Source: Epithemia pelagica
Taxonomy: Eukaryota; Protista; Bacillariophyta
Direction of reading: 5' to 3'
Length of the DNA: 64,000 bases
Assembly: GCA_946965045.2 (NCBI GenBank)
Contig: OX337228.1
Coordinates: forward strand, 5,456,001-5,520,000
The position numbers were made by a program, and so were the translations under genes. The notes below the pieces were generated by a model. That model saw only the letters and a program-made list of their open reading frames with translations. It did not search any database and was not told the DNA's origin. Below are positions 24,811-62,300 of the stretch, piece after piece. Position 1 is the stretch's first letter, and each line of letters starts with the position of its first letter.

Positions 24811-26889
24811 CTAGGCAAAGGTGCCATTGTCGTTCGCATCATGATGGTCATGATCATCTTCTTCTTCTTCATCCTCGGGAACATCCACTTCATCATGATA
24901 CATGGTCAAAGTTTCAGCATTGTCTCGGTATGATGTCACCGGTCGTTCGCCCATGACAATACCATCTTCGTCATCATGGCCCGGTACCAACTGGCGTCGT
25001 CGTTTGAGCGACGATCGACTCGAGGAGGAGCAACAACACGAGACAAAGGTGACCGTAAAGAGCATTCCCAGGACAAAACTAGCAATGGCCACGGCACCCA
25101 CTGCCCATTGTCCACCACTGGTTTTCAAAATTTCTTGAGCCTCCTTGACATGATCATTAAAGGTGGCCGGTGTGGGATGTTGCAAGGTACAGTCGCGTTC
25201 CATCATGGGAGTGGTCAAATCAATCAAAATGTCCAAATCGCAAAACTGTTCCGGTGCGGCGGGGCACCCATCAATGCGTGGTGTCCAGACTTGGCCATTG
25301 TACAAGAGTCGAAAGGCATGACTGGTGGGGTAGACGGATGTATCCGTGTTGCCTCCAAAGTTTACTTCGTGTAGTTCCAATATCATCATGGACGCATACG
25401 AAGGCCACCAATCACTGATTTTCCAGGCACCCAAACTTGCCAAGAGAGGCAACAGAGTGGTATCGTGTCCACTAAAGAGAGCAAACTTGGCCGGTGTCGG
25501 ATCGCCCTCAGTGACACCCCGCGTGGCTGCCTTGAAATGATACATAATTTCATCCCATAGTGGTCCCATGGCAACTTTGGAAAATTCACCGTCATTGGCG
25601 GTGGCCAGCATGTTGTAGGGCATGGCATCGTGCTGGGCCAATCGACGAAATATGTGATCGCCATAATCTTTGGTCTCGTCACCACTGCCATCACCACTGC
25701 CTGGACTACTGGACGGCACCGTCGTCTCGGAGGAAAAGTAAAAATTGTCTTGTCCCAAATCTTCGCCTTGATAATCATTGACCGCGTCCGGCAAGTCTCG
25801 ATCGGTGCACATGGTAGTCATGAGACAATCCACGGTTGCAGTTCCTCCTTCCAAGACTTGTTTCTTAAAGTCTTGTACTAATTGTACTTGCGGCGATTGC
25901 AGAAAGGCTTGATATTCTTGTGATTTGTGATACCGATCTTGAATTTCCTTGAGTCGAGGACAAATGTCGAGATTGGCACCCAAAACGTCTCGTTCGCGAT
26001 CCGCCACGTGCAAGGGGAGAATGGGATGTCGATGAGACGACTTGAGATTCTTGTGTAGTCCATCCAATTCATCTTGAAACATTCCTCGCAATACAATTTG
26101 ACCAGACATGAGAGTTCGTTGATCGTCGTCGGATCGATAATAAATACTCGAGGCCAAGGCATTGTCACCATTTCGAAACAATGTGGAGGAATCCAAGAGA
26201 CGAAGACGACGATCGTGACTGTAATCTTTGTCACCATGATATACATAGGCATTGCGCAAAAAGTTTCCATTTTGCAATTCTTGATCATATCCCTGCAACA
26301 ACAATTGTCCATGTTGACAGGTTCCACCCCACGAATTGGTCAAATTACGTTCCGGATCCTGGAGGGCCGTATATTCCTTGTTCATCCAAAACATGCCACC
26401 ATGTTCTTGTTCATTGCGTGGTGGTGTTCCAATCCAGGTCGTCAAGTCACAATTCCAAATGGGTTTGTAGCCTGGCCAACACGTGGAATTGTACGAGGGG
26501 ATATTCCAGGGCGTTCGAGCACCATGACGAACCAAAGCCGTCACATGCAACAATCGAGAATCACCGGCCTTGGAGGTTTCCGGTAAGGGTGGAATGGATC
26601 GCAAGGCCATTTGGTCTGGTGTGGCACAATAATCCGGATACACTGGATACTTGGTGTACCATTCCGTAGTAGTAGTAGAAGAAGAAGAAGCATCGCTGGC
26701 ATCTCGTCGTCGTCCTGGATGGTGTCGTTCGGCTGCCTCGGCTGGTGATTGATCCGTTTGTAACAATGAGGAGGAGGAGGAAGACGATTCACTCCCCATA
26801 CCACTGACTGAAGCCATGGCGCCAGGCAAACACCAACATGATGATATCAACCACCATATCATGCAGAGAATTGTGGACTGGCTCTTCAT
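24811..26889 (-). CDS. Histidine acid phosphatase (branch 2), predicted type I membrane protein
   Basis: Catalytic RHGARTP and SGHDTT motifs. Hydrophobic N-terminal signal after MKSQ (start taken at 26889), C-terminal TM segment (WAVGAVAIASFVLGMLFTVTFV) and acidic tail. Confidence 0.9.
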   Translation of the reverse strand: MKSQSTILCMIWWLISSCWCLPGAMASVSGMGSESSSSSSSLLQTDQSPAEAAERHHPGRRRDASDASSSSTTTTEWYTKYPVYPDYCATPDQMALRSIPPLPETSKAGDSRLLHVTALVRHGARTPWNIPSYNSTCWPGYKPIWNCDLTTWIGTPPRNEQEHGGMFWMNKEYTALQDPERNLTNSWGGTCQHGQLLLQGYDQELQNGNFLRNAYVYHGDKDYSHDRRLRLLDSSTLFRNGDNALASSIYYRSDDDQRTLMSGQIVLRGMFQDELDGLHKNLKSSHRHPILPLHVADRERDVLGANLDICPRLKEIQDRYHKSQEYQAFLQSPQVQLVQDFKKQVLEGGTATVDCLMTTMCTDRDLPDAVNDYQGEDLGQDNFYFSSETTVPSSSPGSGDGSGDETKDYGDHIFRRLAQHDAMPYNMLATANDGEFSKVAMGPLWDEIMYHFKAATRGVTEGDPTPAKFALFSGHDTTLLPLLASLGAWKISDWWPSYASMMILELHEVNFGGNTDTSVYPTSHAFRLLYNGQVWTPRIDGCPAAPEQFCDLDILIDLTTPMMERDCTLQHPTPATFNDHVKEAQEILKTSGGQWAVGAVAIASFVLGMLFTVTFVSCCCSSSSRSSLKRRRQLVPGHDDEDGIVMGERPVTSYRDNAETLTMYHDEVDVPEDEEEEDDHDHHDANDNGTFA

Positions 26890-27169
26890 CCTTGTACAGA
26901 AGACGAGAATCCATGGAATGAACAAAACGTCGAACCACAATGCCAAAGATCGCTGGAACAAATGAATGACCGCCCCAAACACGGAGCGGGATTGAAATGA
27001 GCCTAAGGCGACTGGAATAAGTCAAAAGCGACTGAATCTCTACGGAAAAATTTGGACCGCACGATGCCATCAGATGCCAACACGTATTTCCTTCCATTGC
27101 ATCCATCACCAACCCGTCTTCATCTTCTGTATACAAGAGAAGCTTATAACATTCTTGAAGTGTGAGATC

Positions 27170-28207
27170 ATGAGATCTGCATTCATATCACGGTGTCGTT
27201 ACATACCAAAGTATTGGATCCGTTCTCCAGGAGGAGGAGGAACGTCCACTCAACATGGATGGTTCAGGTCCGGAACAAGTGCGGTTCTCGACGTACAACC
27301 ATGCAACCAACAAACACATGCATGCCATGCTGTCCCTTGCCGGAGTTTTTCTTCGAAGCCACAGAATTCAAAAAAGTCTACCAACGAAAAAGAAGATGAA
27401 GCCGCATCATCTTCTGTTTCGTATTCGGAAACCAACGACCCGGCTGATCCAGCCTATTTTCGACATGCGGGAATCCTCTTTCATGACAAGGCCATTTCTT
27501 CGCACTTGTTTCCCGACAATTCCGTCATTAAGCGGCCCTTGAATGACGGAGATCCCATTGATCCCAACCGTCGGTTGCCGGTGGAATTCGAATATGGATC
27601 CTTTTGGATGATCAAAGAAATGCGAGTTACCGATGACAAACCCGTACGAACCAACCCAGACCTCATTCCACAAACCTTGGCACAGCCCCTACCTCCATTG
27701 ACTGTCACATCCTTGGCCAGCGATGGGAATGAGGAGATTGTCCTTCCCGATCATTTGATTCAACAAAATAGATCCAACGACCCGGCGGCACAATGTACCG
27801 TCCTAGCGCTCAGTTGTCGACAATACGGCTTTTCCTTTATACCCTCCTGGATCGATCCCATTCGTGAACGATATGGCAACAACATTCGCGTCCAAACGAT
27901 TGTTCTCAACGTTTCCGAAGGCGGTTTCCTCCTTCGAACCTTGTCACCCCTCTTGAAATGGATGGTTCGTATGAATACCAGCGAGGCGGAACGACCCTAC
28001 ACCTACATGCACTATGGAAATGAAGCAGCCTTTAAGGACTTTCAAATACACTTGGGATGTCACAATGTCATGACGTGCTTTGTCTACCTCCTGGATGGAT
28101 TGGGCAATGTCCGATGGGCTGCATCGGGGGCGGCCGAACCTGAGGAACTGCAAGACTTGTTGGACAAGCACATTCCACAACTGTTACCCAAAACAAAACT
28201 AAAATAA
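27170..28207 (+). CDS. ATP10: Mitochondrial ATPase assembly factor ATP10-like
   Basis: Mitochondrial-type presequence (MRSAFISRCRY...RSFSS) and C-terminal FVYLLDGLGNVRWAASGAAEPEE matching the ATP10 pattern. Confidence 0.8.
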   Translation: MRSAFISRCRYIPKYWIRSPGGGGTSTQHGWFRSGTSAVLDVQPCNQQTHACHAVPCRSFSSKPQNSKKSTNEKEDEAASSSVSYSETNDPADPAYFRHAGILFHDKAISSHLFPDNSVIKRPLNDGDPIDPNRRLPVEFEYGSFWMIKEMRVTDDKPVRTNPDLIPQTLAQPLPPLTVTSLASDGNEEIVLPDHLIQQNRSNDPAAQCTVLALSCRQYGFSFIPSWIDPIRERYGNNIRVQTIVLNVSEGGFLLRTLSPLLKWMVRMNTSEAERPYTYMHYGNEAAFKDFQIHLGCHNVMTCFVYLLDGLGNVRWAASGAAEPEELQDLLDKHIPQLLPKTKLK

Positions 28208-28391: not shown

Positions 28392-30085
28392 TCAATGATC
28401 AAACTCTTTCATGAGCTCCAAGGCACGATCCAGTTCGTCGGGTGTAATGTCACTGACGCAAATGCTTTCACCAATGTCCGTAATAAGGGGAATCCTCTGT
28501 TCGCCATGACGATGTTCGACGGCATCCTTGCAACTTTGCCAGGCCAGTTCCGACTGCAAATCCGGCGAGTTGGTGGGAAGTTTCAAGACCTTCATGCAGG
28601 CAAAGATGCGTTTCAACGTATCCATGGTGATGTAGGCACGTTGGTAACTCAAGACACAGCAAAAGAAACCATCCACGTTGACGGCTTCGCCGTGCATAAT
28701 GTCGGCTCCCGGAACCATCTCGAGAAGTTTGGAAAATGTGTGACCATAATCCACGCATCGTTCCAGCTTCTTTTCCCAAAGATTGGGGCCAAGTTCTTCC
28801 AGCATGATTTGAATCGACAAGTCAATAATTCGAGAACCAACTTCCTTCAACGATTCCGAATCTGGCGAAAACTTGGATTTGACAAGACTTTCACCGTGCG
28901 TCTCCAGCAATTCAAAAAGATCCACCGAACGGACCAATGCCAACTTGACAATTTCTCCCAAACCATTGCAAATATTTCGTTCGCACTGAGTTGAGATAAA
29001 GGCAGTGTCCAGCACGCACGACGACGGAGCGTAAAAAGACCCAACCCTGTTCTTGTATGTCTCTCCCGTCAAGCCACAGCAATAGTCAACTCCATTCTTG
29101 ACTCCAACACTAGCGTCCACAATTGCCAAAAGGGTAGTCGGGACACGTACAAAGGGAACACCTCTTCGGTAGAGGCAGGCTCCCATTCCGGCAATGTCCA
29201 AGACAACGCCCCCGCCAATGGCCAGAAAGGGTTCGCGTCGACGGAGCTTGTAGGCGCACAATGCGTCCAAGAGCGTGTCCACTGCGGCGGGACGCTTGTC
29301 AGCCTCGCCTCCGTCCAAAACACAGGTTGTCAATTCAATGCCATTCGCCTCAAAGTATTGAAGAATCTTGTCTCCATAAAGTTCTTGGATTGCCGAATCC
29401 AGCACGGCAAACCGACGATTGTACCCTTCCGGATGGACACCCGTCGACTCCAAGAGTTGAGGGTTCATTGGGTCAAACAAGGTACCATGTGGAATGATGT
29501 TGACATCATACGATATGGGGAGATCAAACACATTTCTCCAACCACGCGTCCTCGACACAACCGTTGTTTTGGTGGTGACCAATGCGCCCGGCGTCTTGTC
29601 GACCTGAGTTTTTTCTTGTGTCAAGGTTTTAGTGAAACTGAAAACATTTTGCGGCGCCCGTTCAAGAGGCTTGAGGATTGTCGTCATTCCATCGCCATTG
29701 TTTTCTTCTATAATAGGTTCGGCGGTTTCGGTTTTGTCGTCGTCGGAACTTGATGACGTAGTTGCAAATGTTGCCGTCGACTCAAAACTCTTGAGCTCAG
29801 CTGCAGATTTCTCAAACGCAACCAATGCTCCTCTCACATCCTTGGGTAGCATCTTCCACGAGCTGAGTACCTTCGAAGAGAGTACGCCTGTTGCCGAATT
29901 CCCATCTGAGATGGAGACTTCTTTGCTACATGACAAATAGCCGCAAGCGTGAGGATTGTAATTTCCCAAGTTCAACAAATGGGAGTTAAGTGCATTTACC
30001 TCAACGAAGAAATAGCAAGTTCGGTCGATCCGAGATCTTTCTCTGTTGTCATTTCCTCAATGGTGGGCGACATGGTTGACTCCAT
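28392..30085 (-). CDS. EEVS: Sedoheptulose-7-phosphate cyclase, 2-epi-5-epi-valiolone synthase (EEVS) type, 2 exons, ~539 aa
   Basis: DHQS-fold motifs GGGVVLDIAG and PTTLLAIVDASVGVKNG, plus EEVS-type MLEELGPNLWE..LERCVDYGH and HGEAV. Exon 1 (30085-30000) reads MESTMSPTIEE. Intron 29999-29926 (gtaaat...tgtag). Confidence 0.88.
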
Positions 30086-31066
30086 CTTGTTCTACTTCCG
30101 ATTATGTGTTATGCTTCTTACGTTTGCCTCTGTTGCCTCCAATGAACTCTTTTCCAAAAAAGTGAGGGCGCGTGGGCTTGAATGATGTATGAGAACTTGA
30201 AACAGGGGGGGAGCCAAATCCTTAGCCCTTTCAGTGTGTTTGTATATTGGTCACATTATTTGTGATTAGAGCATCTCACTGCTGGAGTGTACTAGAGAAT
30301 GCTTTTGGTGCTTTTGGTATCTTGACACGTCAGCAGGTGGTACGCATGCCCAAACGTCATTGAAATCGAAATGATGTCATGGAAAAGCATTCGACGTTTG
30401 ACCCATCATTTTGGCTTCTTCCTCATCATCATCCTCCTCGTGGTCCTTGGCATGTCGCCGGTCCTCGATCTCTGGACCATATCTTCTTTGCTTGTTCAAC
30501 AAGCAACGGTGCATTTCATAGAAGATGACAAGGCGCGAGGAATTGGATTTTCAGATGCGATTGCAATGTGTGCATGATCGACAGCGTCCTCTATAGGTGG
30601 ACATTTTGAAAACGACGGAACTTGAGGCATGGGGATCCTTTCCGTGGGGGATGCGGTGCATTCGTGTCCAGAGCACGGCGACTTCTCACTCCACGTCGAC
30701 TTCAAGGAAATTCAAATCTGCACATCAACGACACGTGGCACGTTTGTCCTCTCTTTGGTGGACTAACAAAATGGTAGCAAGGATGGTAGCCTGATCGCTT
30801 CTTCTTGTCTTAGGAAAAGAGAACAGGCACGAGGGAAGACCGTCGTATCCTATGAGCATGCGGAGAGGAGAAAGAAGTGTACAAATAGCACATTTGCTAC
30901 GGTTGTTTTGTTTGGCATGAAACATCAATTTGACTGAAAGGCTAAGAGCAAGGTCATCGGGGAAGAAATTCATAGCCTACGACCTCGCGAAGAGGAGCGT
31001 GAAGTGTGCAAGTAATCATCAACACACGTCCATTGAAAATACAGAACGTTAAAGTTTGTCTAAACA

Positions 31067-34000
31067 TTAAATTTCTTGGCTCCCTCGTTCAAAGACCATT
31101 GCTTTCCGAAGTAGCTGACTAACATCAATGTGCGCCCGATCTCGAGTGCTGACATCAATATGATACGCAGCCACTAGGCTGGCGAATTGGACTGCCGATT
31201 CCAGATTCAACGATTTGTTGGTCATGTGTGCGCTCAACTGTTCCTCCGAAAAGGCAGCGGGCTGATGACTCCCGGAAAATGAAACGTTCGAGTCGAGTGC
31301 CTCCATGTGATCCATGACCATCATGGACATTTCATTGCCTTCTTCTTCACCATTCTCCTCCAGAGCCTTGCGTTCGTACATGGATTTGACTTCATCTGTC
31401 TCGCTCTCCCACATTTCGTGACACATGGAGAAAATAGCTTTTTTGTCGTCATTGCACTGCTGCTTCAATGTCACATAGTTTTCGCGCATATACAGAGTGT
31501 AGGGTGACATCTTCTTCTTTCCCCGCCGCTCATTGGCCGGCTCAGGCTTGTTCCTCCGATGAGTGTCCTCAGAAGAAGGAACAACTCCTGCAGGGGAACT
31601 CTCCATGGCCATTCCTGTATGTCGCAGCAAGGTCGCGACTAACAGGCCCGATGTGAAGGCATCGCCTGCACCGTTTCCATTAATGATCGTGCCCGGTGGA
31701 AGTTCGACACTACTGACGCGAGCCGTCCTGTCGATCCATGCCTCTGGCAGCATTTCAGACCGTAGGAACCGAGCTTTGTTGTTGCAGGAAACAAAACTTC
31801 CTTTCTTCCCCCTTGTGACCGCAACCACAGCTACACCACATTTCAGAAATAGGTTGGCAGCTTGCGCAAGCGCCATCTCGTCGTTTGGGCTATCGTCCAA
31901 TTGACAACCTGTCAGCAAAACTAGCTCCTCTTGATTCAGGTGAAGAATGTCCACTTGATCGAGGGCCGCTCCCAGTACAGGATCATTTCGTATTTCCGAG
32001 GCGGATCGTAGCCTTCCCTGAAACAAGTCTTCTGGTACACCATTCAAATCGAGAGCAATGATTCCGCCATCAATCATGACACTCCGGGCCTCTAAGAATA
32101 CTTGAAGCAGTTTCTCGCCTTGGATCATGGGAAGCAAGTGAGGATAACCAAACAAGAACGCTCCACATATTGGGGACATCTGTTCCAAATCTGCATGATA
32201 ATTGTCGAGGTCATCAGCAGACAAATGCGAAAAGTCTAGAGACGGCCCGGATGATGCTGCCGTCATGGCGGTAAGCATTTCAACAACCTCAACTGGCGTG
32301 AAATCGGTATTTCCAGCTGCATCAAAGAAGCACCCTCTTCGTCCATCGTCGTAAATGGGAAGGACTGCCAAAGCAGTTCTTGAATCTTTGTTCTTTCCTC
32401 TAGCGGACTTGATCAATTTTGTGTTGACGTTACGACACGATGTGCCGCATTCTTCCAGCAGAGCAATCAGTTTGTCTCCTGTTCCGTCGTTACCAACCTT
32501 GCATATGGGCACAACAGAGTGGACCACAGGAGGAGTCACTAGCATGTATTCGTCATCTAGCGGTGCGCCATGACAAAGACGTGCCAGCGTTTTGCATGCC
32601 ATCGAAACGCTTCCTCCACCACAGCTTCGTTCACCTTTGAAGGACTCAATGCTCTCACCACCTCCTCCAGTAGCATGGAACAGCTGCATATCCACACATG
32701 CAAGACCAGCACAAACAATCGCCGCATTATGGGGAATGGCCCATTGCGTAGTTTTCTCGTCAGGTCGGATTCGAACACGTTTCTTCGAGGAAGATTTCTC
32801 GTGCTTACTCAAGCGAGCCTGATGTGCCAAAACGACCTGTTGATCCAGCTCTTGCATTTGTCTGAAAAACCCTGGATCGACACCTTTGGCAGCACCCTCT
32901 GGCACTTTAAACAAATAGGACAGTGCCTTAGCAACTTTATCGTATGGCCAACTGCGACCTGAGAAGTAGTCACACCATACGGCTCCATCGATCATTAAAG
33001 GAACACAAAGAACAGAATCCGAAGCTCTCGTGTACGTTACCATCGTGTGAGGTTGTCCCAAAAAGCCCAAGCTAGTGTACTCCACAAAATCCCGTTTGTC
33101 ATCGTTAATGAACTCCGTGAACATGATGGATACTTTGTGATCCAATTGATCTTCTTGCCAGGGGGCAAAAATATTGTGCTTGACACGAAGCTTTGCGTCG
33201 GCGGCAGTCTTGGCAGATGCCAAATTGCGCATATCGTTATTTCCTAAATGATTGCTCGAGGCCACAACACGAGGCAAGAGCCCCATTGTTCGGATGTATT
33301 CAAGTGCAGCGGTTTTGAATTTTGTTTGGCCTGCCTTGAAATCGGTTCCAAGGCAGTATACTCCAAGTTGTTGTGTCGCCAAATCTGCCAAGCCTGGACA
33401 TGATACCGTGTTTTGACTTCCACCGTTGATAAAGGAACACCCCTCCAGCAGTGCTGCAGTTGCATATAAAATAGAAGGTGGGATTGGGCCGCCGCGTTGG
33501 TCTTCGTCGAGTTCGATTGCCTCGAGCAGTTCATTTGCTGTCTTGAGCTCAAGGATAAGACCGCAGTTTGGTTCAACACTGGCGGACCAGATCACCTGAC
33601 CAAGGTGTAACACGAAGTTAGACCAAGAGAAAGGCAACTGACAAACACCTCAGTAGAATGTTTTACACTCTGAAAACACTTACAGTCGTGTGTCCCACGA
33701 CACCGTTCCGCCATTTAAAATATCGAATGTCGGCCCGCAAACACTTAAGCTTTTCGGAATCAGTCGAAGCTTCTGATTTTCCCAAAAAGTGTGTTGCTGT
33801 TTCATGCTGGGATGCCCCAATGAATCGAGGATCATACACGCCACGAAAGACTTTCACCTTGTTCATTTCATCTCGAACTTGTCGAACCAAATCATAATCA
33901 AGAATTTGTTGCTGGAACAAGGCGTCACCGGGCTTTGTCGGACGAATATCCTGTCAATCAATCAAAGAAAGAAAATGAGCAACCCGACACGACCGTGGCA

Positions 34001-34576
34001 AAAGACAACATTTCGCAACATCGAGTGTCGTTGGCAAAGCGATGAATGACGTACCCATCCACCAATCGCAGCCATGGAAGCATCTGCGAGGCCTTTGACT
34101 TTGTCACGATACCCGACTCCTCCATGGTCGCCTTTTTGATCAAGTTGCGTAATACAACCGAAATAATTCGCCGTCATGGATTCTCCCTTGGGCCCATACC
34201 ACGATAAACCGAGACGATTGGCCAAGACACCGGCGAGCAAGGTCGTTCCATTGGCTCCACCCAAGCCAATCACCAAAACACCAAAGCTTCCTAATGTCTT
34301 GGGTTTGTGCTTGACATCCTTCACCAGAACAGGTTGTGGAGCTTGCGGTGTAGGGACCATAAATGGCCCATTGGGTTGGTGTCGATACGATGACGCCATA
34401 CTGTAGACACTCGTGACATCGGATGACGCATCTGTCATGGACTGTGAGAATCCTGAAGAGGATCCAGTGGATCCAGCCGACGGTGATCGAAAGCCAGGAT
34501 TTTCCACATTGCCCCTGTCACTTCCCACACCAGTGTCTCGAGGATTTGGTTTCAACCGTGCTGAAGGCTTCGACAT
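31067..34576 (-). CDS. Fusion protein: divergent myo-inositol-phosphate synthase (INO1/MIPS) + PfkB carbohydrate kinase + HMG-box-like insert; 3 exons, ~1105 aa
   Basis: MIPS motifs [51 protein letters not shown]. PfkB motifs [40 protein letters not shown]-like [11 protein letters not shown]...[21 protein letters not shown]. Introns 34054-33951 and 33683-33596 join three ORFs in frame (GGW|DIRP and GHTT|VIWS). Confidence 0.9.
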
Positions 34577-36015
34577 TTCGGATGCGAGGTGGAGAGAGAT
34601 GCTACGAAGAAAGAATGATGGCTCGTCGATTGTGTGTAAAAATGTGGGGTCGAAAAACTACCCGTTCAAAGTGGACAAGTGGACCTCCACCCTCCACACA
34701 AGGGGTAGAGCTAGATGCGAGAATTCCCAGCCTTGGACTTTCGCGGTGGAGGCAAAGACAAGATCAAGAAGTGTTCTTGACCCTCTCTTTCGAGTCAAGG
34801 TCAAGGGGTGTAGTCTACTCTCGAAGTCATTATTCCCATTCCTACGTCAAGAACATTGTTCATGCTTCGTTCGATAGCTCTCTATGTGCTCGACGAGACA
34901 CAGACGAAACAATAACCAGAGCACTGCACTTCTGGCTTTGTCCCTTTCATTACTCCTAGGTATTAGGAGCCGATTACCCATGTGTATTATCTCATCACTC
35001 GTAGTGTTAGAGGCAGATGATTTCGAGATTCGAGAAGCTAATACTTGATATGAAATAGGCATCGAGTGTCAACGCGCAGGGCGATATCCCGTATTCGATC
35101 CTCTGGGAGAGACGGATCTGCTCACATGATCAACTCCAGAACATCAACCTTCAAGTCCATGAAGCGAGCAATTTTGATGTATTTCGTTCTGAATCCTGAG
35201 CTGACTCCTGTTAAGAGTAGTCCTTGCTTTTTGAACATGAAAGCCTCACGTTCTAGTCGGTTCTGCGGCAACCTGATGAATGGGCATTGGGCGTCGGGTT
35301 CACGTATGATGGGAGGGTTAGGAATGCGGACTACGCACTACGCGCATGCACTGGGTAACCTTACTGCAGCTGGGTACTGGGTCCCCCAATTTGCAATTTG
35401 GGTCTGGCGTTGACCTGGGCAATACAATTATTATGGATGGTGCGCATGATGGTGCTTATGCTTATCTCATCTCATCATTTTTTCAAACGAACACCGACCA
35501 AATTTTGTGAACGATTTTCACAACATTTTGCTTTCCTTGTGATGACACGAGGCCGCACGAGTCTGCCTCTCACCAATAAATCTTACTACGGATAGTTACC
35601 TTTGAACGCAAGCCGACTCTCTACTCCCAAGTGGTTACAATACTATAATATGATCAAATCCAATAACACATTCATATTTTATCCGCGTGGAAGTAGGCCG
35701 ACATCTGACTGCCAAATGAGAACTCCGAACGAAGCGTGCTCAATTATGTGAGCTCTGGACTCCATTATGGCATCGAATTATTAAGCCACAGAAGCTCTTG
35801 GCGGGTGAAAAGTGTCCAGTCAACAGAAGACTTCATTTGTGCTCGCCATCCCGAGGTTATGGCCGTAATACTTCCAATACACTTGCGCTGCTGTGGTATT
35901 GCGTGGAGGACTTTGGAGCATTTTGAAGACGAAGAGATAAGGGGTTCGTCAAAGGTCGTCGCTTTCTTTGATTTGCATCCGGCTGACTTGTGGTCAGAAG
36001 CTTGCGGGAGGGGCA

Positions 36016-40060: not shown

Positions 40061-41614
40061 ATGTTCGACCCATCGCTCTCGTGGCTCCGACTTTCCTTTG
40101 TCGATTCGGTGCGGTTTCCCTTTAATTACACGTTTATAGATAAGGTCGACGACATTCAAGACCATGAGGATGGAGAAGAAGGACGGAGTAAAATTCTCAG
40201 CGAAGTTTCGGCCTGTCGATTTGTCAACGACAGTGAGCAAGGCAAGAACCATAACGACAAAGACAACAACAACTCATTGCATTATCGACTGTTGTTGGTC
40301 GGTGATTCGGGGGAAGTCTTTACCGCACAAGTGACCTTGTGGAGAATCAATACAGAAGCTGGAAAAGAAACTTTACGCTTCAACATTACTCTTGAAAGGC
40401 AACGACCACTCCTTCTTCCTGGATACAACGTCAATCAAGGTGCCACCGACATGGCATCAACAACGCCGGTTTCATCTCGTTCGGTGGATGCTGAAGGATG
40501 CGAAGTTTTTGACACATGGCCTCACGCCATGTTGGTGAGTTCGGAACATCCCTTGGCCCTCACATGGTTTGATCCACACACAGGGTGGGCAGCCACTACA
40601 AACAACGTGTCTCAGTCTCCGCTGCCTCAGTATAGGATTCCCACACACATTGCCCAGAAAACAAGACCCAACAAGGGTTTCGAGGCGGTCACGGCATGGT
40701 CCAGTCCACGAATGCCGACCGTTGTAGAAAAGGAAGAGGAGGAGGGGGTGGACAACCGTTCCTATTTGGCGCCTTCCTATGTGCTGACGACAACCGAGGG
40801 ACACTTGCGAGATGATCCACCAGGCTTTCATCGATGGCTCTTGTGGAAGACAGACAAAGGAGGGGATCCCATTCTCGAAATGGGACATTGGGCGTCTCGC
40901 TGGAAAGGGAAACTTGTAGGAGATAATCATGAGTTCCTCTCGATCACGGACTTGACCTACTGGCCAGAACAAGAGCTTCTCTTGGTCCTCGAACGAGGAT
41001 ATGATGGAGAAACTAACATGATCAGCCTTTCTTCCGTCGACATGACCTTTCCAATGAGTCGCCCTTCCCAGTCACTCTTGAATTGGACACTGGATACCAT
41101 GTTTTTGGCATCGTCGGCACAAGAATCGATTCAACTCCCCGTGGACAATTACGAATCGCTCTGTCTATTACCCTCGAGTGCGACTCAGAACAACCCCAAG
41201 GAACGACTCGTTCTCTTGGTCAATGATGAAAATCACAATCCCCAACAAATTGGCACCCAATTTGTGTTGTTGCGACTCCATGTAGAGGAGGTTGATGATG
41301 GTAGTCTGAGCAAACAGCATTGCTTGGCAACACGATCCACCCTCTCCTCCTCGTCTTTGGTTCTCGTTCCGGTCTTGTTGGTACTGGGAGGATTGGTTCT
41401 TGTCGCTGTGTTCCAATACTGCCGCAGAATGCGTGATTATGGAAGTAGTTCGCGTGGACAATATAAAGTCACCACCAATGCATCAACCCCGAAACTACCA
41501 CTGGACCAGTATGATGGAAGCGAGGACAACATTCACAACGATCCAGAAGAAGAAGAAGAAGAAGAAGAAGAAGAAGAAGAAGAGGACAGTGATCAAGAGC
41601 ACGGTCTTTCATAA
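40061..41614 (+). CDS. Phytase-like esterase family protein (beta-propeller type) with C-terminal TM and poly-Glu
   Basis: NKGFEAVT, ITDL, LLLVLERGY, DNYESL and LLVNDENHNPQQIGTQF resemble the 'esterase-like activity of phytase' family. TM segment LVLVPVLLVLGGLVLVAVF. True N-terminus unclear. Confidence 0.7.
   Translation: MFDPSLSWLRLSFVDSVRFPFNYTFIDKVDDIQDHEDGEEGRSKILSEVSACRFVNDSEQGKNHNDKDNNNSLHYRLLLVGDSGEVFTAQVTLWRINTEAGKETLRFNITLERQRPLLLPGYNVNQGATDMASTTPVSSRSVDAEGCEVFDTWPHAMLVSSEHPLALTWFDPHTGWAATTNNVSQSPLPQYRIPTHIAQKTRPNKGFEAVTAWSSPRMPTVVEKEEEEGVDNRSYLAPSYVLTTTEGHLRDDPPGFHRWLLWKTDKGGDPILEMGHWASRWKGKLVGDNHEFLSITDLTYWPEQELLLVLERGYDGETNMISLSSVDMTFPMSRPSQSLLNWTLDTMFLASSAQESIQLPVDNYESLCLLPSSATQNNPKERLVLLVNDENHNPQQIGTQFVLLRLHVEEVDDGSLSKQHCLATRSTLSSSSLVLVPVLLVLGGLVLVAVFQYCRRMRDYGSSSRGQYKVTTNASTPKLPLDQYDGSEDNIHNDPEEEEEEEEEEEEEDSDQEHGLS
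41546..41581 (+). repeat. (GAA)12 microsatellite encoding poly-Glu
   Basis: Perfect gaa run directly visible; the following gag gives 13 Glu. Confidence 0.95.
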
Positions 41615-55481: not shown

Positions 55482-58400
55482 CTAAGCGGCCGAACCGCAT
55501 AGTAAGTGGGGCGTTTCTTCTCGGGGGAAGAATGTGGCTATTGGGAATGGAGTGTACAGGGGTGGTTGTGGGGCGAATCCTTGTTGTGTTAACCTTGCCC
55601 GCTGGGTTTTCTGGTATCTGCTTTCATATTCTTGGTTGCGTAGCGCCGAAATTTGTTTGTTTAGATGTTTGGCCAAGGACGTTACTAGGGCGTGTCCAAG
55701 TGACGCCTTTGCGTAATGTCCTATCGAGTGGATGTGTGCTTCGTCGTATCGAAATCTTGGTGATCGTTTGGTGGCTTTGTTGGCGATGTTGTTTGGAGCG
55801 TATTCGATTTCCTGGTAGAGGTCAAAGGCGGCGGTGTGTTGTTTGCTTCTTGAGGGTGACCGTCCGAAGTGTGCATCTGGCCATTGTGGTGGGATGGCCG
55901 AGGAGAATTCGTGTGGTAAGTCGTCCTGGTGGAAGAGAAGGCGCTGGGCGAAGGATCCAAGGGATCCGAGATGATCAACGGTAAACGGGATCAAATATAC
56001 TCCGTTTGCAAGAAGGTGTTTTGCTGTGTTGTCGTCATGGCAGAATTTCGAACGGGCTGCTTCCTGGTGCGGTCTGGAGGCTGCATGGCCAAGGGCACTG
56101 TTATCGACCGGGACGGGAAGTGGTGTTCGAGCATGAGGGGGCGGGATGGTGACATCGATGGCCACATAGTTGAAGGGTTCGTTCTTCTGTGGTTGTTTCA
56201 ACAACAATCCAACGTCGGCTGGTCTCACATTTCTTGTGTGTTGTGGGGCCAAACCGGGAGGTTCAATGTGGACGTCCTTGCAGTCCTCTACGTAGCCGGC
56301 CCCGGGTGCCAGGCGGGAGAGGAGGTCGTAGACGGTGTCCCTTACTGCATTGGAGAGGGCCGTCTTCGGAGCCATGCTGCATGAAAAAAGATGATCGCCC
56401 TGTGGGTCTAGGGTGGGACAGGAGGGGCATCGGCATTTCCCTCGGAGGTGGTCTGGGAGGACTGGAAGGCGGAGCTTGCGTCGCAGGGCGGTGAGAAACA
56501 GGTTGTTGGGGATTCGGAAGTGTTCGGCCGTGCGTGGGAGGTGAAGGGCTAGGCTTGTGAGTGGTGACAGGGCTGAAGGGAGACTGGGGAGCAGTTCTGG
56601 TGGTGTGGCAGAGAGGAGGGATGGGACGAGGTGTTCCACCAGAGTGTGGTGGGCCAGTTGGTGGTGTGTGTTCTTGTCGTACAGGTCGGTGTTCGTTAGT
56701 GGGGCCGGAGCAAGCTCGTGGGTGTAGAGTGCAAGGGAGCGACGGAAAGCCTGGAACCACGGGAGTTCACTGTGTTGCCAATCGGTGAAAGCAGCCTTGT
56801 GTGTGGGGGGTACTGGCCAGTCCTTGGAGGAGGCCAGTTTGATGGATCTCACTGTTTGTGTCAATAGACGTGGTCGAGCGCTGGCTGCCGGGCTGTGGTA
56901 ACCCAGTCCTCCAAGGCGGTTTGGAAGGGCGGCCATGATTGTGGTCATGGTTGTGATTTGGTGTGCCGGTGTGGACGTGATCTTGGCTAGGAATGCAGCA
57001 ATCAAACCGTCCGCCTGGGTAGTGGTGGGACTGTCCCAAAGGGTGGTGGTTGCCTCGTTGGAAGGGTGTGCGAGGACCATGTCTGTGGGCAGCAAATGCA
57101 GGATCGACGGTACGAGCGAGTACCGGAAAAGGTGACTTTGCGTTTGTAGGTCCGTGAGCTCGGTGAGCAGGTCTACGTTTTGTTGCATTTGGGTGAGTCT
57201 CTTTTGGATGTATTGGCGCGCAAAAGCTTGGGAGCCGACCGGTTGGCCAAGGAACCTGGTTCCCGTGGTGATTTCCGCGGCCGTTCGGTTTCCAGGGTTG
57301 AGGTGTCGGAGGGCATCGTAGAGGTGTTGTTGCGCCTGTGTTGGTAGGTATCCGTCGGTTGTGGCGGTGATGGCGGTTGTTGTGGTTAGGATTTGTGTTT
57401 TTGCTTTGTTCAGTTGGACTCCGAGCGGTGCGCCGAGTTCTTCGAAACGGGCCAGAAACCACGGTAAGTCTTCGTGTGGCAGGCAAATGGATGTGTCGTC
57501 CATTATGGAAGCTGTGTGTGCTTGTCCGCCTTTGCCATCGTCATGTGCGTCCCCTGCTTTCTTCCGGCGGAGAGCGCGTTGGAGTTGTTCTTTATTGATC
57601 TGTATGGTCACGGTGAGGAGGACCAGGCAGGAGAATAATGGGCTCAGTGGGCATCCTTGTGGGAAGCCTTCGTCTTGGAGGAGTTTGTCGGCCTCTCCCT
57701 TGTCGTTGAAGAACCAAGAGGGTGTTTGTGTTTGCGTCAAGAGGTCGTACAGGGGAAGAAGGGGTGTCGTTTCTACGCGAGAGGCCAGTATTCGCCGTGC
57801 CTCTGTTCGTGACGTGTTGTTGAACATGTTGTGGAGGTCCAGGCACACCAAAGCTCTTGTTGGTGTTTGGGGTAGCTCAATGTATTTTGCCACTTCGTTG
57901 GTTGTTGTTTGCGCCACGAAGTCAATCCCTCCTGGGATTTGGATCCCATACTGGCCGCCGCTGAGCAAGAGCGGCGTGATTTGGTCGGTGATGTGTGTGA
58001 GGGCGATTTTGGCGGCGACGCGCCGCAAACCGGTGCCGATGCCGATGGGTCTTAGGCGATGGAGTTTGTTTGGGTCCTTGTGGAGGGCAAGGAAGTAGTT
58101 GCTCCCCAGGAGTTGGTGGACGAAAGTCGGAACTTGGGCGGTGAGGATGAGCTGGAACAGGGCTTGGAGGTTGTGTCGGTATGGCCGTGTTGCCGTGGCA
58201 GCTCTGGTGGTGCGGTGTAGCGCCATTTCGACAATGGCGTCCGTGCAGGTGGCGAAGGGGCCCGATGCCGTGCCTCGTTTCATTTGTCGCATGGCAAGGT
58301 CAAACAGGTCTGGGTCGATGTGGATGTAGTTTTCTTCTGGTGGTGGTCGGTCTGGCTGGTTGCCGCGGTTCCTTGTTGTTGTTGGCGGTGGTTCCCGTCT

Positions 58401-59363
58401 CGCCGGGAACAGATCTTGTTTTATGGCGGCAATGCGTTCGGGCGTGAGTGTGGCGGTGGGCATGTGGGAGGTGAGCCGGGAGTAGGCGGTGGAGTAGTTG
58501 CCGAGGTCCGCGGCTCGTTGCGCGGCTGCCAGGCGGCTGGGATGAATGGGTCCGCCTTGGAGGTGTTGTCTGGTGTGTTGTTGTCGTTGTTTTTTCTTGT
58601 TGTTGCCGGTTGTTGTTCGCTTGCTGGTGGAGGTTGCTGGCGGTGGTTGTGACCATACCAAATGGTGCAGTTCTTCGATGCGTCCGGCCTTTAGCAGGGC
58701 GTTTCTTGCTCGGAAGGCTTCGGCGTGGGTGGTGTGTCCTGTTGTTTCAGGTGGCGCCAAGAGCATGGGTTCAAGAAGGAGGAGGAGTTTCCAGAAGGGA
58801 CTTGCTTCCACGAGGGCTGCCGGTGGTTTCGTTTCTCGGATGATGGAGTCTTGGAGTTTCGGTGTGGCCTTGAGGATCCATTGCACGGTGTTGTTGTAGG
58901 TGACGTAAAAGGCTTTCTTGGTTGGATGTTTGAGGTTGTGCCATACGCTGCGTCGAAACGGGGGCGGTGTTGGGTCAAGTTGGTGAAGGAAGGCGAGGCC
59001 CGTCTTCCACTGCGTTGCTATGTGAGGATCATCGTGTCGGTACGTGTGGAGGACAAGGTCCAAGTTGTTCTCTTTTCTAGTATGTTTATTTTCGTGGTGG
59101 TTGTGTAAGTGGCCCTCGGTGGTGAAAATGGCGGTTGGTTTGTTGCAGGTGTGGCAGACATGGAGGCCGTGTTGTTGACAGAAGGAGTGGGATAGATATG
59201 TGGACGGTCGTGTTTCTCCGTGTGCTTCGATGAGGTGTTGTTTTAGTTGGAGGGTTTGTGTGTGTTTGTTTTGGTTGCGTGACTGGTGTGTTGGTGGGTC
59301 GGGCCGCCATGGACAATGGGGGACGGGGCATGCCCGGAGGGTGGGTCGCCGTAATGTACTCAT
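55482..59363 (-). CDS. Retrotransposon ORF2: C2H2-type zinc fingers, reverse transcriptase, CCHC + RLE endonuclease
   Basis: CPVPHCPW...HLIEAH and CHTCNK...HLHNHH fingers. RT motifs LRPIGIG, DLHNMFN, GFPQGCPLSPLLF, SIMDD, LNKAKT, FLGQPVG. C-terminal CRCPSC...GDHLFSC and RPAD...AIDVT. The in-frame ORF extends to ATG 59480; ATG 59363 is preferred because it overlaps the ORF1 stop. Confidence 0.92.
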   Translation of the reverse strand: MSTLRRPTLRACPVPHCPWRPDPPTHQSRNQNKHTQTLQLKQHLIEAHGETRPSTYLSHSFCQQHGLHVCHTCNKPTAIFTTEGHLHNHHENKHTRKENNLDLVLHTYRHDDPHIATQWKTGLAFLHQLDPTPPPFRRSVWHNLKHPTKKAFYVTYNNTVQWILKATPKLQDSIIRETKPPAALVEASPFWKLLLLLEPMLLAPPETTGHTTHAEAFRARNALLKAGRIEELHHLVWSQPPPATSTSKRTTTGNNKKKQRQQHTRQHLQGGPIHPSRLAAAQRAADLGNYSTAYSRLTSHMPTATLTPERIAAIKQDLFPARREPPPTTTRNRGNQPDRPPPEENYIHIDPDLFDLAMRQMKRGTASGPFATCTDAIVEMALHRTTRAATATRPYRHNLQALFQLILTAQVPTFVHQLLGSNYFLALHKDPNKLHRLRPIGIGTGLRRVAAKIALTHITDQITPLLLSGGQYGIQIPGGIDFVAQTTTNEVAKYIELPQTPTRALVCLDLHNMFNNTSRTEARRILASRVETTPLLPLYDLLTQTQTPSWFFNDKGEADKLLQDEGFPQGCPLSPLFSCLVLLTVTIQINKEQLQRALRRKKAGDAHDDGKGGQAHTASIMDDTSICLPHEDLPWFLARFEELGAPLGVQLNKAKTQILTTTTAITATTDGYLPTQAQQHLYDALRHLNPGNRTAAEITTGTRFLGQPVGSQAFARQYIQKRLTQMQQNVDLLTELTDLQTQSHLFRYSLVPSILHLLPTDMVLAHPSNEATTTLWDSPTTTQADGLIAAFLAKITSTPAHQITTMTTIMAALPNRLGGLGYHSPAASARPRLLTQTVRSIKLASSKDWPVPPTHKAAFTDWQHSELPWFQAFRRSLALYTHELAPAPLTNTDLYDKNTHHQLAHHTLVEHLVPSLLSATPPELLPSLPSALSPLTSLALHLPRTAEHFRIPNNLFLTALRRKLRLPVLPDHLRGKCRCPSCPTLDPQGDHLFSCSMAPKTALSNAVRDTVYDLLSRLAPGAGYVEDCKDVHIEPPGLAPQHTRNVRPADVGLLLKQPQKNEPFNYVAIDVTIPPPHARTPLPVPVDNSALGHAASRPHQEAARSKFCHDDNTAKHLLANGVYLIPFTVDHLGSLGSFAQRLLFHQDDLPHEFSSAIPPQWPDAHFGRSPSRSKQHTAAFDLYQEIEYAPNNIANKATKRSPRFRYDEAHIHSIGHYAKASLGHALVTSLAKHLNKQISALRNQEYESRYQKTQRARLTQQGFAPQPPLYTPFPIATFFPREETPHLLCGSAA

Positions 59364-62300
59364 AGGGCCCCTTGGCCCTTGGAAGCATGCGGGACCACAT
59401 GGCCGGTGCGGGGGCCGGCGACGGGGGAAGGGGACGACGTGGGGCGTGGCCTCTGCACTAGTCGTTCTGCGTATTCCCATACGTCTTGCGCGTCTGTGTC
59501 CGTGCTGAAGGACGTAATCCCGTCCAGATATTGTTCCAGGACGGGCAGTTGTTGCTCATTGTTCGAGGCGACAAAGTCAATGATTTGTCGGAGTTCCTCG
59601 GTCGTGTGTTGCGAGTTCCATTGCTGGAATAGCGGGCGTGAACTGTCGGACGGGTCGGAGACGTTGTCCCATTCGTCTGGAACGTCCATGTCCTCCATGT
59701 CGACGTCTGTGGGGCGATCGTTGTATCTGTCTCTGTCCTCCTCGTACTCTGCCTCGGGGTTGTCGTCGTATTGCAGGGGCGCGTATTGGTTGGAGGACGT
59801 GTTGCTTGTGTCTGATGGTGGCGCTCTCGGTGCTGGGGACGACGTAGCTTCTGCCACTTTCTTCCAGTCCGTGCCGTCGTCGTATGGGTCGTCTTCGGTG
59901 TCGTCGGCATTGCTGGCGTCGTTTTGGTTGCTGTGGTGGTTGTCTTGGTTCGGCCGTTTCCTCGGTGGTGGTGCGCCTGGTGATGTGGATCGGGCTCTCG
60001 TTTCCCGTGTGTTGTTGTTCTCGTCGTCGTCGACTGTTGTGGGGTGTGCTTTCTTGACGATTCTCCGTGTGAGATCGAGGAGGCGGGACGTGTGGTTGGC
60101 TTGGATTGGTTGGTGGTCGTTGGAGGTGTTGTTGCGTGGCGGTGGGGCCGCTGCTGTGACCGAGGCCATGGTTTGTCGTAGTAAGTTTCGTGGGAACCCG
60201 GGGTACTGGCGAATGGTTGTCGTGTTGAGATGGAGGGTATCCGGAGTACGGAGGAGGTAAAGTACAAAAGCAATCGGCTGTTGTTCATGGTGGCAAAACT
60301 CGGGAAAGGCCGCTTGGTAGTTTTCCATTTGTGTCAGCTGTTCCCACTCTTCGTCGTCAGCGAGGTCGTTGAGGGGGAAGAGGCGAATGCGGACGCTTGC
60401 GGAGAAGTATTGGTCCAGTTCACGGAGTGCTTCCAGTGTCGTGGTACGTTGTTGTTGTGTTTTAGGCACTGGGATCAACTGGATGATGTTGTCGCGCCAG
60501 CGGAGGTCGTTGTTGGCCGTTGCTTTGTGGAGCTCATTGTATGCACGGAGAATGGTCTCGAACATGCGTTTGGAGGACGCCGAGATGTAGGTGACAGGGA
60601 CAGTGCCGCGTTGTTTGGATTTGAAGTCGCCGCTGAAATTGCCGTCGCGGCATCCGATGTGTTTGTGAAAGTCGTCCGACATTTGGAGGTGTGTTGGGAG
60701 GAAGCCTAGGAGTTGGTCGTGGATGGCGTCCGTGAGGTCGATGTATCCTCTTTTGTGTTTGATCGCGCTGGCCGGGATGCCAACGATGATACCGTGTGTC
60801 TCACATGTTCTGTTGTTGCAGGCAGGGGCGTAAATGTCGATGTCCTTGTATCTTGGGTTTACCGTGGGGTTGGACTGCTGCGATCCGTGACGGAGAATCT
60901 GTTGCAGGCCGTGGTTGTCGTTGCGGAAATCATCCCGGTGATGTTTATGCCACATTTGCGTGACGAACCGGATGCCTTGCTCCTGAAATACCTCGGTGTC
61001 GAAGGCGTCATTGATGGGGGCGGGGCGGAGCGTAAGGTGGAAGGAAGACGTGTATCCGCGCCCTCCTCGTTCGTTATTGTTGTTGTTTCGGTTGTTGCTG
61101 TTTCGCGGTGGTTGTTTTGTTTCCAGGAACTCGACCCTGTGCACTTCCAGCATCATTGGTTCTTCCCGGCATCGGTGGTGTTGCAGCACTCGGTGGATGT
61201 GTTGCTTTAAGGTGGTTTCCGTGACCCGTGGGAGTCGCGACTCTTCTTGGTGGTTCGCTTTGTGGCGCACCACCAGTGTAAGGTGGATGGTTGCCGGTGG
61301 GTCCGTTGTTTTGGGGCGTTTCGGTGTTGCCCTGTATGGGTTGATGGTGGTCTCCGTGGTTGCCTCCATGGTGTCGTTGGTGCCGTCCTGGTTTTCCGCC
61401 CTGTCTTGGGTGTTGTCCTGTTCGTCATTTTTGGGCGTGGCATTGTCCTGGTTGTCGCTGTCCCTGTTGTCGTTATCGTTGGGCTCCGTGGGTTGGTTGC
61501 CGTCTCGGCCTTCCATGTACGGGACTTGGTTGTCCTCCCTATTGGGAGGGGTGGAGGTGTTGTGGGAGTAACGAAGCATTGCCTCCTGTGTGTTTTCGGT
61601 CGCATGGTTGAAGATCCTGGTCGTTGCGGTGGTGGCGGCCAATGTGCTGGAGCGTCGGCCGGACAGGGACGGTGGGGATGAAAGACGTGGCTCCGAGGTC
61701 TGGATGGTGTCGTCCTGGGTGGTGGTTTGGTTGGTGTCGTCGAGGGTGGTGTCTGGGCTGTTTTTGTTGTTTTTGGTGGTTTCCGTGGGCGTGTTTTCTT
61801 TTTTGTCTTTTTTGTCGGTGTTTTTGTTGTTGTTGTGGTGGTCAGGGGTGATGGGGTTGGACGTGTCCGAGGATTGGGAGCAGGGAGGGTTAAACGACGG
61901 CTTGGGTTGGTTGGCTTCCGGGTCGCCGCGGTTACCGAGCATGGTGGCTGCCTTTGCACGGGTGAGAAGGGCGTGGTTGCGTGGAGCAGTGGTGCGTTTG
62001 GTGGACGGCGGTGGCTTCGTTGCGTTGGTGGCGGCGAACTTGGAGTGGGCTTGCATGGTCGCTGTTTTGCAGGGGGCTTGGTTGTTGCTGGCGAAGTTTT
62101 CGTTCTGGCGGGTACTCAGTGGCGAGGCGAACTTTTCCGACACTGTGAGTGGAGATCGTTGGGCTGCTTCATTTTGTTTGGCGACGGGGTGGTTGTGGCG
62201 ATGATGACGTGGCTTGGACTCTTCTGTTGCTGAGTGGTGGTGACGGCGCCAATCGACGACGTGTCGGTTTCCGTTTCTGTCGGTCTGTGTCCCGGTTGTC

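Follow-up and report, generated by a model that had tools for sequence, protein, structure and literature searches.

The protein considered here has its closest described relatives in three known families. Canonical myo-inositol phosphate synthases (MIPS/INO1) are represented by the solved enzymes from yeast (1JKF/1P1J) and Caenorhabditis elegans (1VKO). Among the PfkB kinases, E. coli YdjH (3H49/3IN1) and the ribokinases share the ribokinase-like fold, and the plant myo-inositol kinase (MIK; maize lpa3) is also a PfkB-family enzyme, as a preliminary description of this DNA had stated and the literature confirms (PMC4765147). HMG boxes of the HMGB type are known from TOX (2CO9) and NHP1 (2LHJ). 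A single gene combining all three modules is located in a 64,000 nt stretch of the diatom Epithemia pelagica (GenBank assembly GCA_946965045.2, contig OX337228.1, positions 5,456,001 to 5,520,000 of the forward strand), hereafter termed the window (G+C content about 47%). The gene lies on the minus strand, starts with the ATG at 34576 and encodes 1105 aa. Compared with canonical MIPS, the protein carries in addition a disordered N-terminus of 95 aa and about 575 C-terminal aa comprising a PfkB kinase and an HMG box. In contrast to YdjH and the ribokinases, the kinase harbours this HMG box past the GAGD helix and is fused to MIPS. The HMG box in turn is part of an enzyme fold, not of a chromatin protein or transcription factor. 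In a Pfam scan, all modules scored above the curated cut-offs. The preliminary description had recognized MIPS and PfkB; it had omitted the conserved HMG-box insert and the presence of the architecture in databases.

The spliced open reading frame (ORF) extends from 34576 to 31067 on the minus strand, is composed of three exons and has one terminal stop. Exon 3 stays open over 842 codons and contains the C-terminal MIPS half, the entire PfkB kinase and the HMG box. The stretch was found in four public sequencing runs, X1 to X4. X1 to X3 retain the introns and are thus genomic. X4, whose run type is not on record, can be taken to be derived from RNA or cDNA, as the introns are missing. Contig record 13 of X4 (4073 nt) spans 34693 to 30429 and comprises the full coding sequence, the 5' untranslated region (UTR) and about 640 nt of 3' UTR. 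Its only joints omit 88 and 104 nt and coincide exactly with the two predicted introns, which read CT..AC on the plus strand; its first ATG is the predicted start codon. X4 coverage is zero in the bin 30184-30367 and a separate contig begins at about 30081; therefore, the downstream gene is transcribed separately. In other diatoms, MMETSP transcripts labelled 'type:complete' carry the same fused ORF, and a related fusion is one continuous ORF on a metagenomic contig. These data confirm that the fusion is genuine, i.e. one gene with one spliced transcript. That annotation or assembly merged two neighbouring genes is hardly conceivable and was rejected: All three modules reside in one unbroken exon, a spliced transcript contig runs across everything, and the same fused ORF recurs in many diatom genomes and transcriptomes. 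The preliminary description was correct in placing MIPS and PfkB in one uninterrupted exon (single frame 33595-31067), and the separate mRNAs it had considered as an objection were not seen, since one contig covers both halves. As a side observation, the genomic runs of the same study differ by insertions of 19 nt behind 30382 (3' UTR) and of 16 nt behind 34895, by the loss of 6 nt at 35356 and by eight single-base differences, e.g. 32093 T>C and 33770 C>T, which look like alleles or strains.

The MIPS module is of the eukaryotic type and has an intact active site. Both MIPS Pfam domains (PF07994 and PF01658) were found above their cut-offs, spread across the three exons: NAD_binding_5 yielded 77.3, 47.4 and 43 bits on the three exons, and Inos-1-P_synth 72.7 bits (cut-off 27). 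The N-terminus of the NAD_binding_5 model aligns with the Rossmann glycine motif GLGGANG (aa 104-110); among 33 fusions, conservation reaches at least 90% for G106, G109 and N111, and G112 does not vary. The closest solved structures are eukaryotic MIPS enzymes, above all that of C. elegans (1VKO; E 1.6e-32, 116 bits over 250 aa), but also that of yeast. With these numbers, the module is far more diverged from canonical enzymes than they are among themselves. It shares with them the two Pfam domains, GxGGxxG, the catalytic Lys, Asp and Asn residues and the K-x3-K spacing. The active site was aligned to 1VKO, 9M53, 9F2K and 1JKF. In yeast numbering (D320, N350, N354, D356, K369, K373, K412, D438, K489), AKLRVK corresponds to K369/K373 with the same spacing, DDKRD to K412, SDSVL to D438 and LFKVP to K489. 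One segment of 10 residues keeps D320 and has Ala at the position of yeast S323; a second 10-residue segment keeps N350, N354 and D356. The structure alignments show that the catalytic Lys, Asp and Asn residues are retained, and they are invariant in the 33 intact fusion proteins. Hence, the motifs that the preliminary description had regarded as preserved (AKLRVK, DDKRD, DSVL, FKVP) do align to yeast catalytic residues. Among intact diatom orthologues, the catalytic half of MIPS shows 78-96% identity to that of the window protein and is the most conserved part, with 57-88% for the kinase; this conservation argues that MIPS is under selection as an enzyme. Judged from these motifs, MIPS activity of the window protein, i.e. 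conversion of glucose 6-phosphate (G6P) into inositol 3-phosphate (Ins(3)P), is likely. Cyclohexanetetrol, a diatom osmolyte, was considered as product of the divergent MIPS; a literature search gave no link between them, and the idea was dropped. In Phaeodactylum tricornutum, two genes are annotated as MIPS, Phatr3_J45120 and Phatr3_J6934 (supplement 3 of PMC10276504). Possibly, one is the fusion and the other a canonical MIPS; a literature search for both identifiers yielded no further paper. In sequence searches for a canonical diatom MIPS, members of the fusion family took up the match lists.

The kinase module matches PfkB (PF00294) with 53.1 bits (cut-off 25.8). The GG, NxxE and NGAGD motifs are all in place and do not vary within the subfamily described below. 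The GAGD base, also noted in the preliminary description, aligns with the catalytic motif of YdjH and ribokinase. A structural model of the kinase and HMG segment adopts a ribokinase-like fold (mean per-residue confidence, pLDDT, 80.6; predicted template modelling score, pTM, 0.73). With this model, Foldseek found ribokinases, YdjH and sulfofructose kinase at E-values of 1e-17 to 1e-16 and TM scores of about 0.65-0.72 (by target length). In a profile search against the PDB, YdjH ranked at the top (6e-26), followed by ribokinases. With both, the kinase shares GG, NxxE, GAGD and the lid motif (DGER/DGRRG), whose Arg in G-R-R-G (R139 in the kinase alignment) is invariant. It differs from them by its low identity (16-20%), by invariant motifs of its own (GYPHLLP, LDxNG and GxRGC) and by a variable insert of 20-45 aa.

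A search of 1.84 billion representative sequences with the kinase segment yielded just 230 matches at E<=1e-3. In a profile search, members of the group scored at least 165 bits, and any PfkB protein outside it at most 81 bits. On these scores, the kinase belongs to a distinct, sharply bounded and uncharacterised PfkB subfamily of the ochrophyte and red-algal lineage. This subfamily comprises the diatom fusions, MIPS-PfkB fusions that lack the HMG box, and stand-alone proteins of 360-470 aa. The latter are encoded in red algae (Porphyridium, Rhodosorus, Chondrus, Galdieria, Timspurckia), a raphidophyte and an amoebozoan, and, additionally to the fusion, in the diatoms Amphora and Thalassiosira exigua. 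Stand-alone kinases (Porphyridium P0216, Chondrus P0293, Galdieria P0260, Fibrocapsa P0177, Amphora P0329, Thalassiosira exigua P0344) have the same subfamily motifs, but neither MIPS nor HMG box, and are 26-31% identical to the window kinase (four aligned). Their genomic context in the red algae Porphyridium, Rhodosorus and Chondrus was not informative. Attempts to assign a substrate by database models were abandoned: NCBIfam matches were weak and did not discriminate (ribokinase 35 bits, IolC 31, fructokinase 27.7; 1-phosphofructokinase models 17-21), the ESM Atlas returned generic PfkB clusters and Foldseek generic ribokinases.

The HMG box (PF00505) was detected with 27.6 bits in context and 33.1 bits when excised (cut-off 25.4). 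One centric orthologue scored 31.5 bits and another 23.7, just under the cut-off. The box is inserted between the post-GAGD helix and the final kinase helices, presumably just ahead of the ATP-adenine loop as known from ribokinase structures. With this position, it is a matter of speculation that DNA binding could affect the kinase. AlphaFold2 predicts three helices, which occupy positions 417-432, 437-450 and 453-484 in the kinase segment. The mean pLDDT lies at 80-96 for segment residues 411-470 and falls below 50 from residue 472, and disordered linkers flank the box. The three-helix box was found again in a model of a full-length orthologue. Between the two Epithemia species, it is 94% identical, compared to 41% and 71% for the flanking linkers. 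Pennate and centric diatoms alike conserve the motif KKxTPYxLYMRENYxxLK...DDKKAIFxxCHEMWE...VKxxYERK. Nearly all diatom copies found keep the box, and in MIPS-PfkB fusions outside diatoms coverage of the region is 0%. Therefore, the insertion took place in the diatom stem or close to it. It resembles HMGB-type boxes in its Pfam score, its three helices and its conserved residues at the P-Y, W and Y positions, although the pairwise match to solved boxes is weak (E about 0.3). An Asn or a Ser at one position separates sequence-specific boxes of the SOX/TCF type from the HMGB class; the window box has Ser where SOX/TCF boxes have Asn. In addition, two basic clusters are conserved, KKRVRIR in the inter-domain linker and RRGKKK ahead of the box, and look like nuclear-targeting or DNA-contact elements.

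The closest protein, from Epithemia clementina, has the same length (1105 aa) and is 88% identical over exon 3. The same architecture is present in Seminavis, Mayamaea, Nitzschia, Pseudo-nitzschia, Fistulifera, Amphora, Amphiprora, Chaetoceros and many unnamed sequences. For many diatoms it is on record in UniProt, NCBI, JGI and MMETSP, named only 'inositol-3-phosphate synthase' or, at JGI, 'myo-inositol-1-phosphate synthase/sugar/nucleoside kinase'. This means, the architecture search proposed in the preliminary description found it already deposited, while no paper was found in which it is characterised. As far as could be ascertained, neither the combination of the three modules nor the separate kinase subfamily nor the decay of the MIPS site discussed below has been described; the component families are all known. 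Proteins of about 792 aa without GAGD and HMG box (P0113, P0116-P0119) were not accepted as variants: All five end with ...KML at the same alignment point and were taken as truncated gene models. Fusions that have the two enzymes in the same order, with the motifs of both intact, were found in the ochrophyte Phaeothamnion confervicola (P0199) and in metagenomic sequences that group with it (P0195, P0207, P0316-P0320). They differ from the window protein by the absence of the HMG insert and by a kinase that is just 33-37% identical. Because of these fusions, the link between MIPS and the kinase must be older than the diatoms.

We consider it probable, if by no means certain, that the gene encodes one expressed three-module diatom protein with an active MIPS, a kinase of the inositol or cyclitol pathway and an HMG box that directs the enzyme to the nucleus or to DNA. 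In the proposed mechanism, the MIPS module would turn G6P into Ins(3)P using bound NAD+, and the fused ATP-dependent kinase would phosphorylate a metabolite of the same pathway, with free inositol, an inositol monophosphate or a related sugar as candidates. The HMG box together with the two basic clusters would bring the enzyme to the nucleus or DNA. The gene model, the single spliced transcript, domain identities, retained catalytic motifs, conservation and taxonomic spread were observed directly; the activity of both halves, their pathway link and DNA binding with nuclear localisation are what we infer from them.

Several points weigh against this proposal. In the full-text literature search, neither a paper that describes or tests a MIPS-PfkB-HMG architecture nor an assay was found. 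The nearest solved relatives of the kinase (YdjH, ribokinases, sulfofructose kinase and an IolC-like kinase) are all only 13-20% identical, and the substrate cannot be read from the sequence. HMG boxes can mediate protein contacts, too, so that DNA binding is putative here. The metagenomic, diatom-like ORF P0103 (L010 3001-5631, 876 aa, 62% identical) is a continuous MIPS-PfkB fusion without HMG insert; it represents either a secondary loss or a lineage that split off before the insertion, and its placement at the base of the diatom clade is tentative. The Ala at the position of yeast Ser323 is a departure from canonical MIPS. In the model of the full-length Epithemia orthologue, aa 1-98 have a pLDDT below 50, confidence is low in the catalytic loops, and the domain arrangement is unsettled (pTM 0.49). 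The corresponding region of the yeast enzyme, a tetramer, is ordered only upon ligand binding; hence, the low loop confidence carries no weight.

A further objection is posed by about 20 diatom cluster representatives in which the MIPS motifs NHLGNND, KLRVK, DKRDF and FKxP are partly or completely missing; in this respect, too, the fusion family differs from canonical MIPS. Examples are P0056, P0061 (an MMETSP transcript), P0083, P0114 and P0121 (Fragilaria crotonensis, KAI2501708.1). These decayed copies retain the MIPS fold, every kinase motif and the HMG box. Their identity to the window protein amounts to 47-62% in the MIPS catalytic half, 63-67% in the kinase and 61-80% in the HMG box, i.e. 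kinase and HMG box are conserved like in intact orthologues. A kinase-only tree requires at least three changes to the decayed state, and a smaller full-length quick tree forces one. In both trees, decayed P0056 groups with the intact Seminavis clade. At least two independent losses of the MIPS motifs are likely on the basis of these trees, although not proven. As the decayed copies keep kinase and HMG box, the kinase-HMG part has a function that does not depend on MIPS catalysis by its own chain. Ins(3)P synthesis by the fusion chain may consequently be dispensable for the conserved core function. Furthermore, the decay suggests that the species concerned have another inositol source, and the name inositol-3-phosphate synthase is probably wrong for such copies, e.g. 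for KAI2501708.1.

These decayed copies, together with the insertion and strong conservation of the HMG box, would fit a DNA- or chromatin-associated protein in which the enzyme folds serve as metabolite sensors or scaffolds. Comparable cases are the nuclear Arabidopsis MIPS1 and the PfkB-like proteins FLN1 and FLN2 in the plastid RNA polymerase, and FLN1 and FLN2 are among the PDB matches of the kinase profile. However, all catalytic motifs are intact in the window protein and most orthologues, and the MIPS catalytic half is the best conserved part; this points to selection on catalysis, and a mainly regulatory or moonlighting role is considered unlikely. An enzymatic role is also assumed in the suggestion, made in the preliminary description, that the PfkB half is a myo-inositol kinase and both halves yield Ins(3)P, one de novo and the other by salvage. 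Plant and archaeal MIK belong to the same PfkB superfamily (PMC4765147 for the plant enzyme), so that a link to inositol metabolism is plausible, the kinase motifs are all intact, and the fusion to MIPS itself argues for a substrate from inositol metabolism. But no specific relationship to either MIK was detected: A large score gap separates the subfamily from other PfkB kinases, sequence and profile searches found no land-plant-named protein among the subfamily matches, with no direct comparison to a plant MIK sequence, and the archaeal MIK structure is missing from the 60 best PDB profile matches, which YdjH and ribokinases head. The step from PfkB to inositol kinase appears to amount to superfamily membership only; convergence of both halves on Ins(3)P is possible, yet not supported by homology, and is regarded as rather doubtful.

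The kinase might instead take over the MIPS product and convert Ins(3)P into an inositol bisphosphate (InsP2), thereby providing an entry into a lipid-independent route to higher inositol phosphates, possibly near chromatin. Fused enzymes usually catalyse neighbouring steps of a pathway, the HMG box and basic clusters point to the nucleus, and the invariant lid Arg R139 would suit an anionic substrate, although this role of the Arg is putative. However, we know of no PfkB enzyme that phosphorylates an inositol monophosphate, and no special likeness to phosphosugar PfkB kinases was observed (compare the scores of the 1-phosphofructokinase models above). Such channelling is therefore judged to be improbable, to about the same degree as the sensor or scaffold role. 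An extended version, in which the diatom-specific HMG box places MIPS and a new inositol or inositol-monophosphate kinase on DNA and the red-lineage PfkB subfamily supplies the entry kinase of the lipid-independent route, is still less probable. If true, soluble inositol phosphates would be made locally and regulate chromatin or transcription. Very little probability is assigned to an upstream role, also raised in the preliminary description, in which the kinase produces the hexose phosphate consumed by the MIPS cyclase. Fructokinases and other hexose kinases are PfkB members, and weak fructokinase matches were obtained from NCBIfam (27.7 bits) and the PDB. Yet every match is generic, so that specific support is lacking, and kinases that form G6P are usually of the hexokinase/ROK type or ADP-dependent, not PfkB enzymes. 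Besides, G6P is abundant, and a dedicated supply seems needless.

Downstream of the fusion gene follow a gene for a sugar-phosphate cyclase resembling 2-epi-5-epi-valiolone synthase (EEVS), ATP10 and a His_Phos_2 phosphatase gene; upstream are an HLH gene, a bZIP gene and, later, a phytase-like protein gene, whose name likewise relates to inositol phosphates. The coordinates of all features are compiled in the table. The cyclase directly downstream has an N-terminal extension of about 150-180 aa and a transcript of its own in X4. Among its solved relatives, ValA is a 2-epi-5-epi-valiolone synthase and 5TPR a desmethyl-4-deoxygadusol synthase-like entry. Epithemia clementina has the same neighbours and the same downstream order. 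Among seven diatom genomes checked, the cyclase is adjacent to the fusion gene only in Epithemia. In Mayamaea, Seminavis and Fistulifera, ATP10, bZIP, RabGAP or His_Phos_2 genes are close to the fusion, but no cyclase, and Nitzschia and Fragilaria share no neighbours with the window. In Epithemia clementina, Mayamaea and Fistulifera, a His_Phos_2 gene is located a few kb at most from the fusion gene, but unrelated genes are conserved there as well. A conserved cyclitol gene cluster was rejected, since the cyclase adjacency is confined to Epithemia and unrelated genes (ATP10, bZIP, RabGAP) recur, too. The shared neighbours are ordinary microsynteny among raphid pennates. Elsewhere in the window, positions 56000-62000 have a G+C content of 0.56-0.58 and a GC skew of about +0.31; in the remaining window, G+C is 0.44-0.50.

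Table. Coordinates of the fusion gene, its modules and neighbouring genes (window positions)
Feature	Position	Strand	Remarks
5' UTR	34577..34693	-	up to end of transcript contig; no ATG upstream of 34576
Exon 1 (aa 1-174)	34055..34576	-	Ser/Pro-rich disordered N-terminal extension (aa 1-95), then start of MIPS Rossmann fold (GLGGANG); NAD_binding_5 positions 2-48
Intron 1 (104 nt, GT..AG)	33951..34054	-	skipped in transcript contig
Exon 2 (aa 175-263)	33684..33950	-	middle part of MIPS NAD-binding domain (GGWDIRP...)
Intron 2 (88 nt, GT..AG)	33596..33683	-	skipped in transcript contig
Exon 3 (aa 264-1105 and stop)	31067..33595	-	catalytic MIPS half, linker, PfkB kinase with HMG-box insert
MIPS module (aa ~96-530)	32795..34291	-	introns included; catalytic motifs (41 residues)
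Basic cluster KKRVRIR	32762..32782	-	inter-domain linker; conserved; possible nuclear localisation signal
PfkB kinase core (aa ~551-925)	31610..32734	-	subfamily motifs GGGS, DGRRGC, GYPHLLP, LDLNG
NxxE motif (N817-E820)	31925..31936	-	in LHLNQEEL; N273 and E276 invariant in kinase alignment
GAGD motif (G905-D908)	31661..31672	-	anion hole and catalytic base by alignment to YdjH/ribokinase
HMG-box insert (aa ~956-1012)	31349..31519	-	RRGKKK basic arm in front; poorly conserved disordered linkers on both sides
C-terminal PfkB helices (aa 1053-1105)	31070..31228	-	complete the kinase fold past the insert; conserved ...EI C-terminus
3' UTR	30429..31066	-	up to end of transcript contig (~640 nt)
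EEVS-like sugar-phosphate cyclase	28392-29978	-	best solved relative ValA 4P53 (1.4e-82), then 5TPR; transcript start ~30081
ATP10	27074-28207	+	from gene-order survey
His_Phos_2 histidine acid phosphatase (723 aa)	24811-26982	-	apparent hydrophobic stretch near C-terminus
Phytase-like protein (PF13449, 517 aa)	40061-41614	+	apparent hydrophobic stretch near C-terminus, acidic tail; 5.5 kb upstream of fusion gene

Diatoms are major primary producers, and their inositol and inositol-phosphate metabolism is scarcely charted. A diatom gene annotated as MIPS encodes a three-module protein, for which the automated name 'inositol-3-phosphate synthase' is incomplete, and the HMG box hints at a connection of a metabolic enzyme with DNA. 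The lineages with decayed MIPS motifs provide a natural experiment that separates the functions of the modules. Once the kinase substrate is identified, a whole PfkB subfamily would gain a function, and a gap in lipid-independent inositol-phosphate synthesis could be filled.

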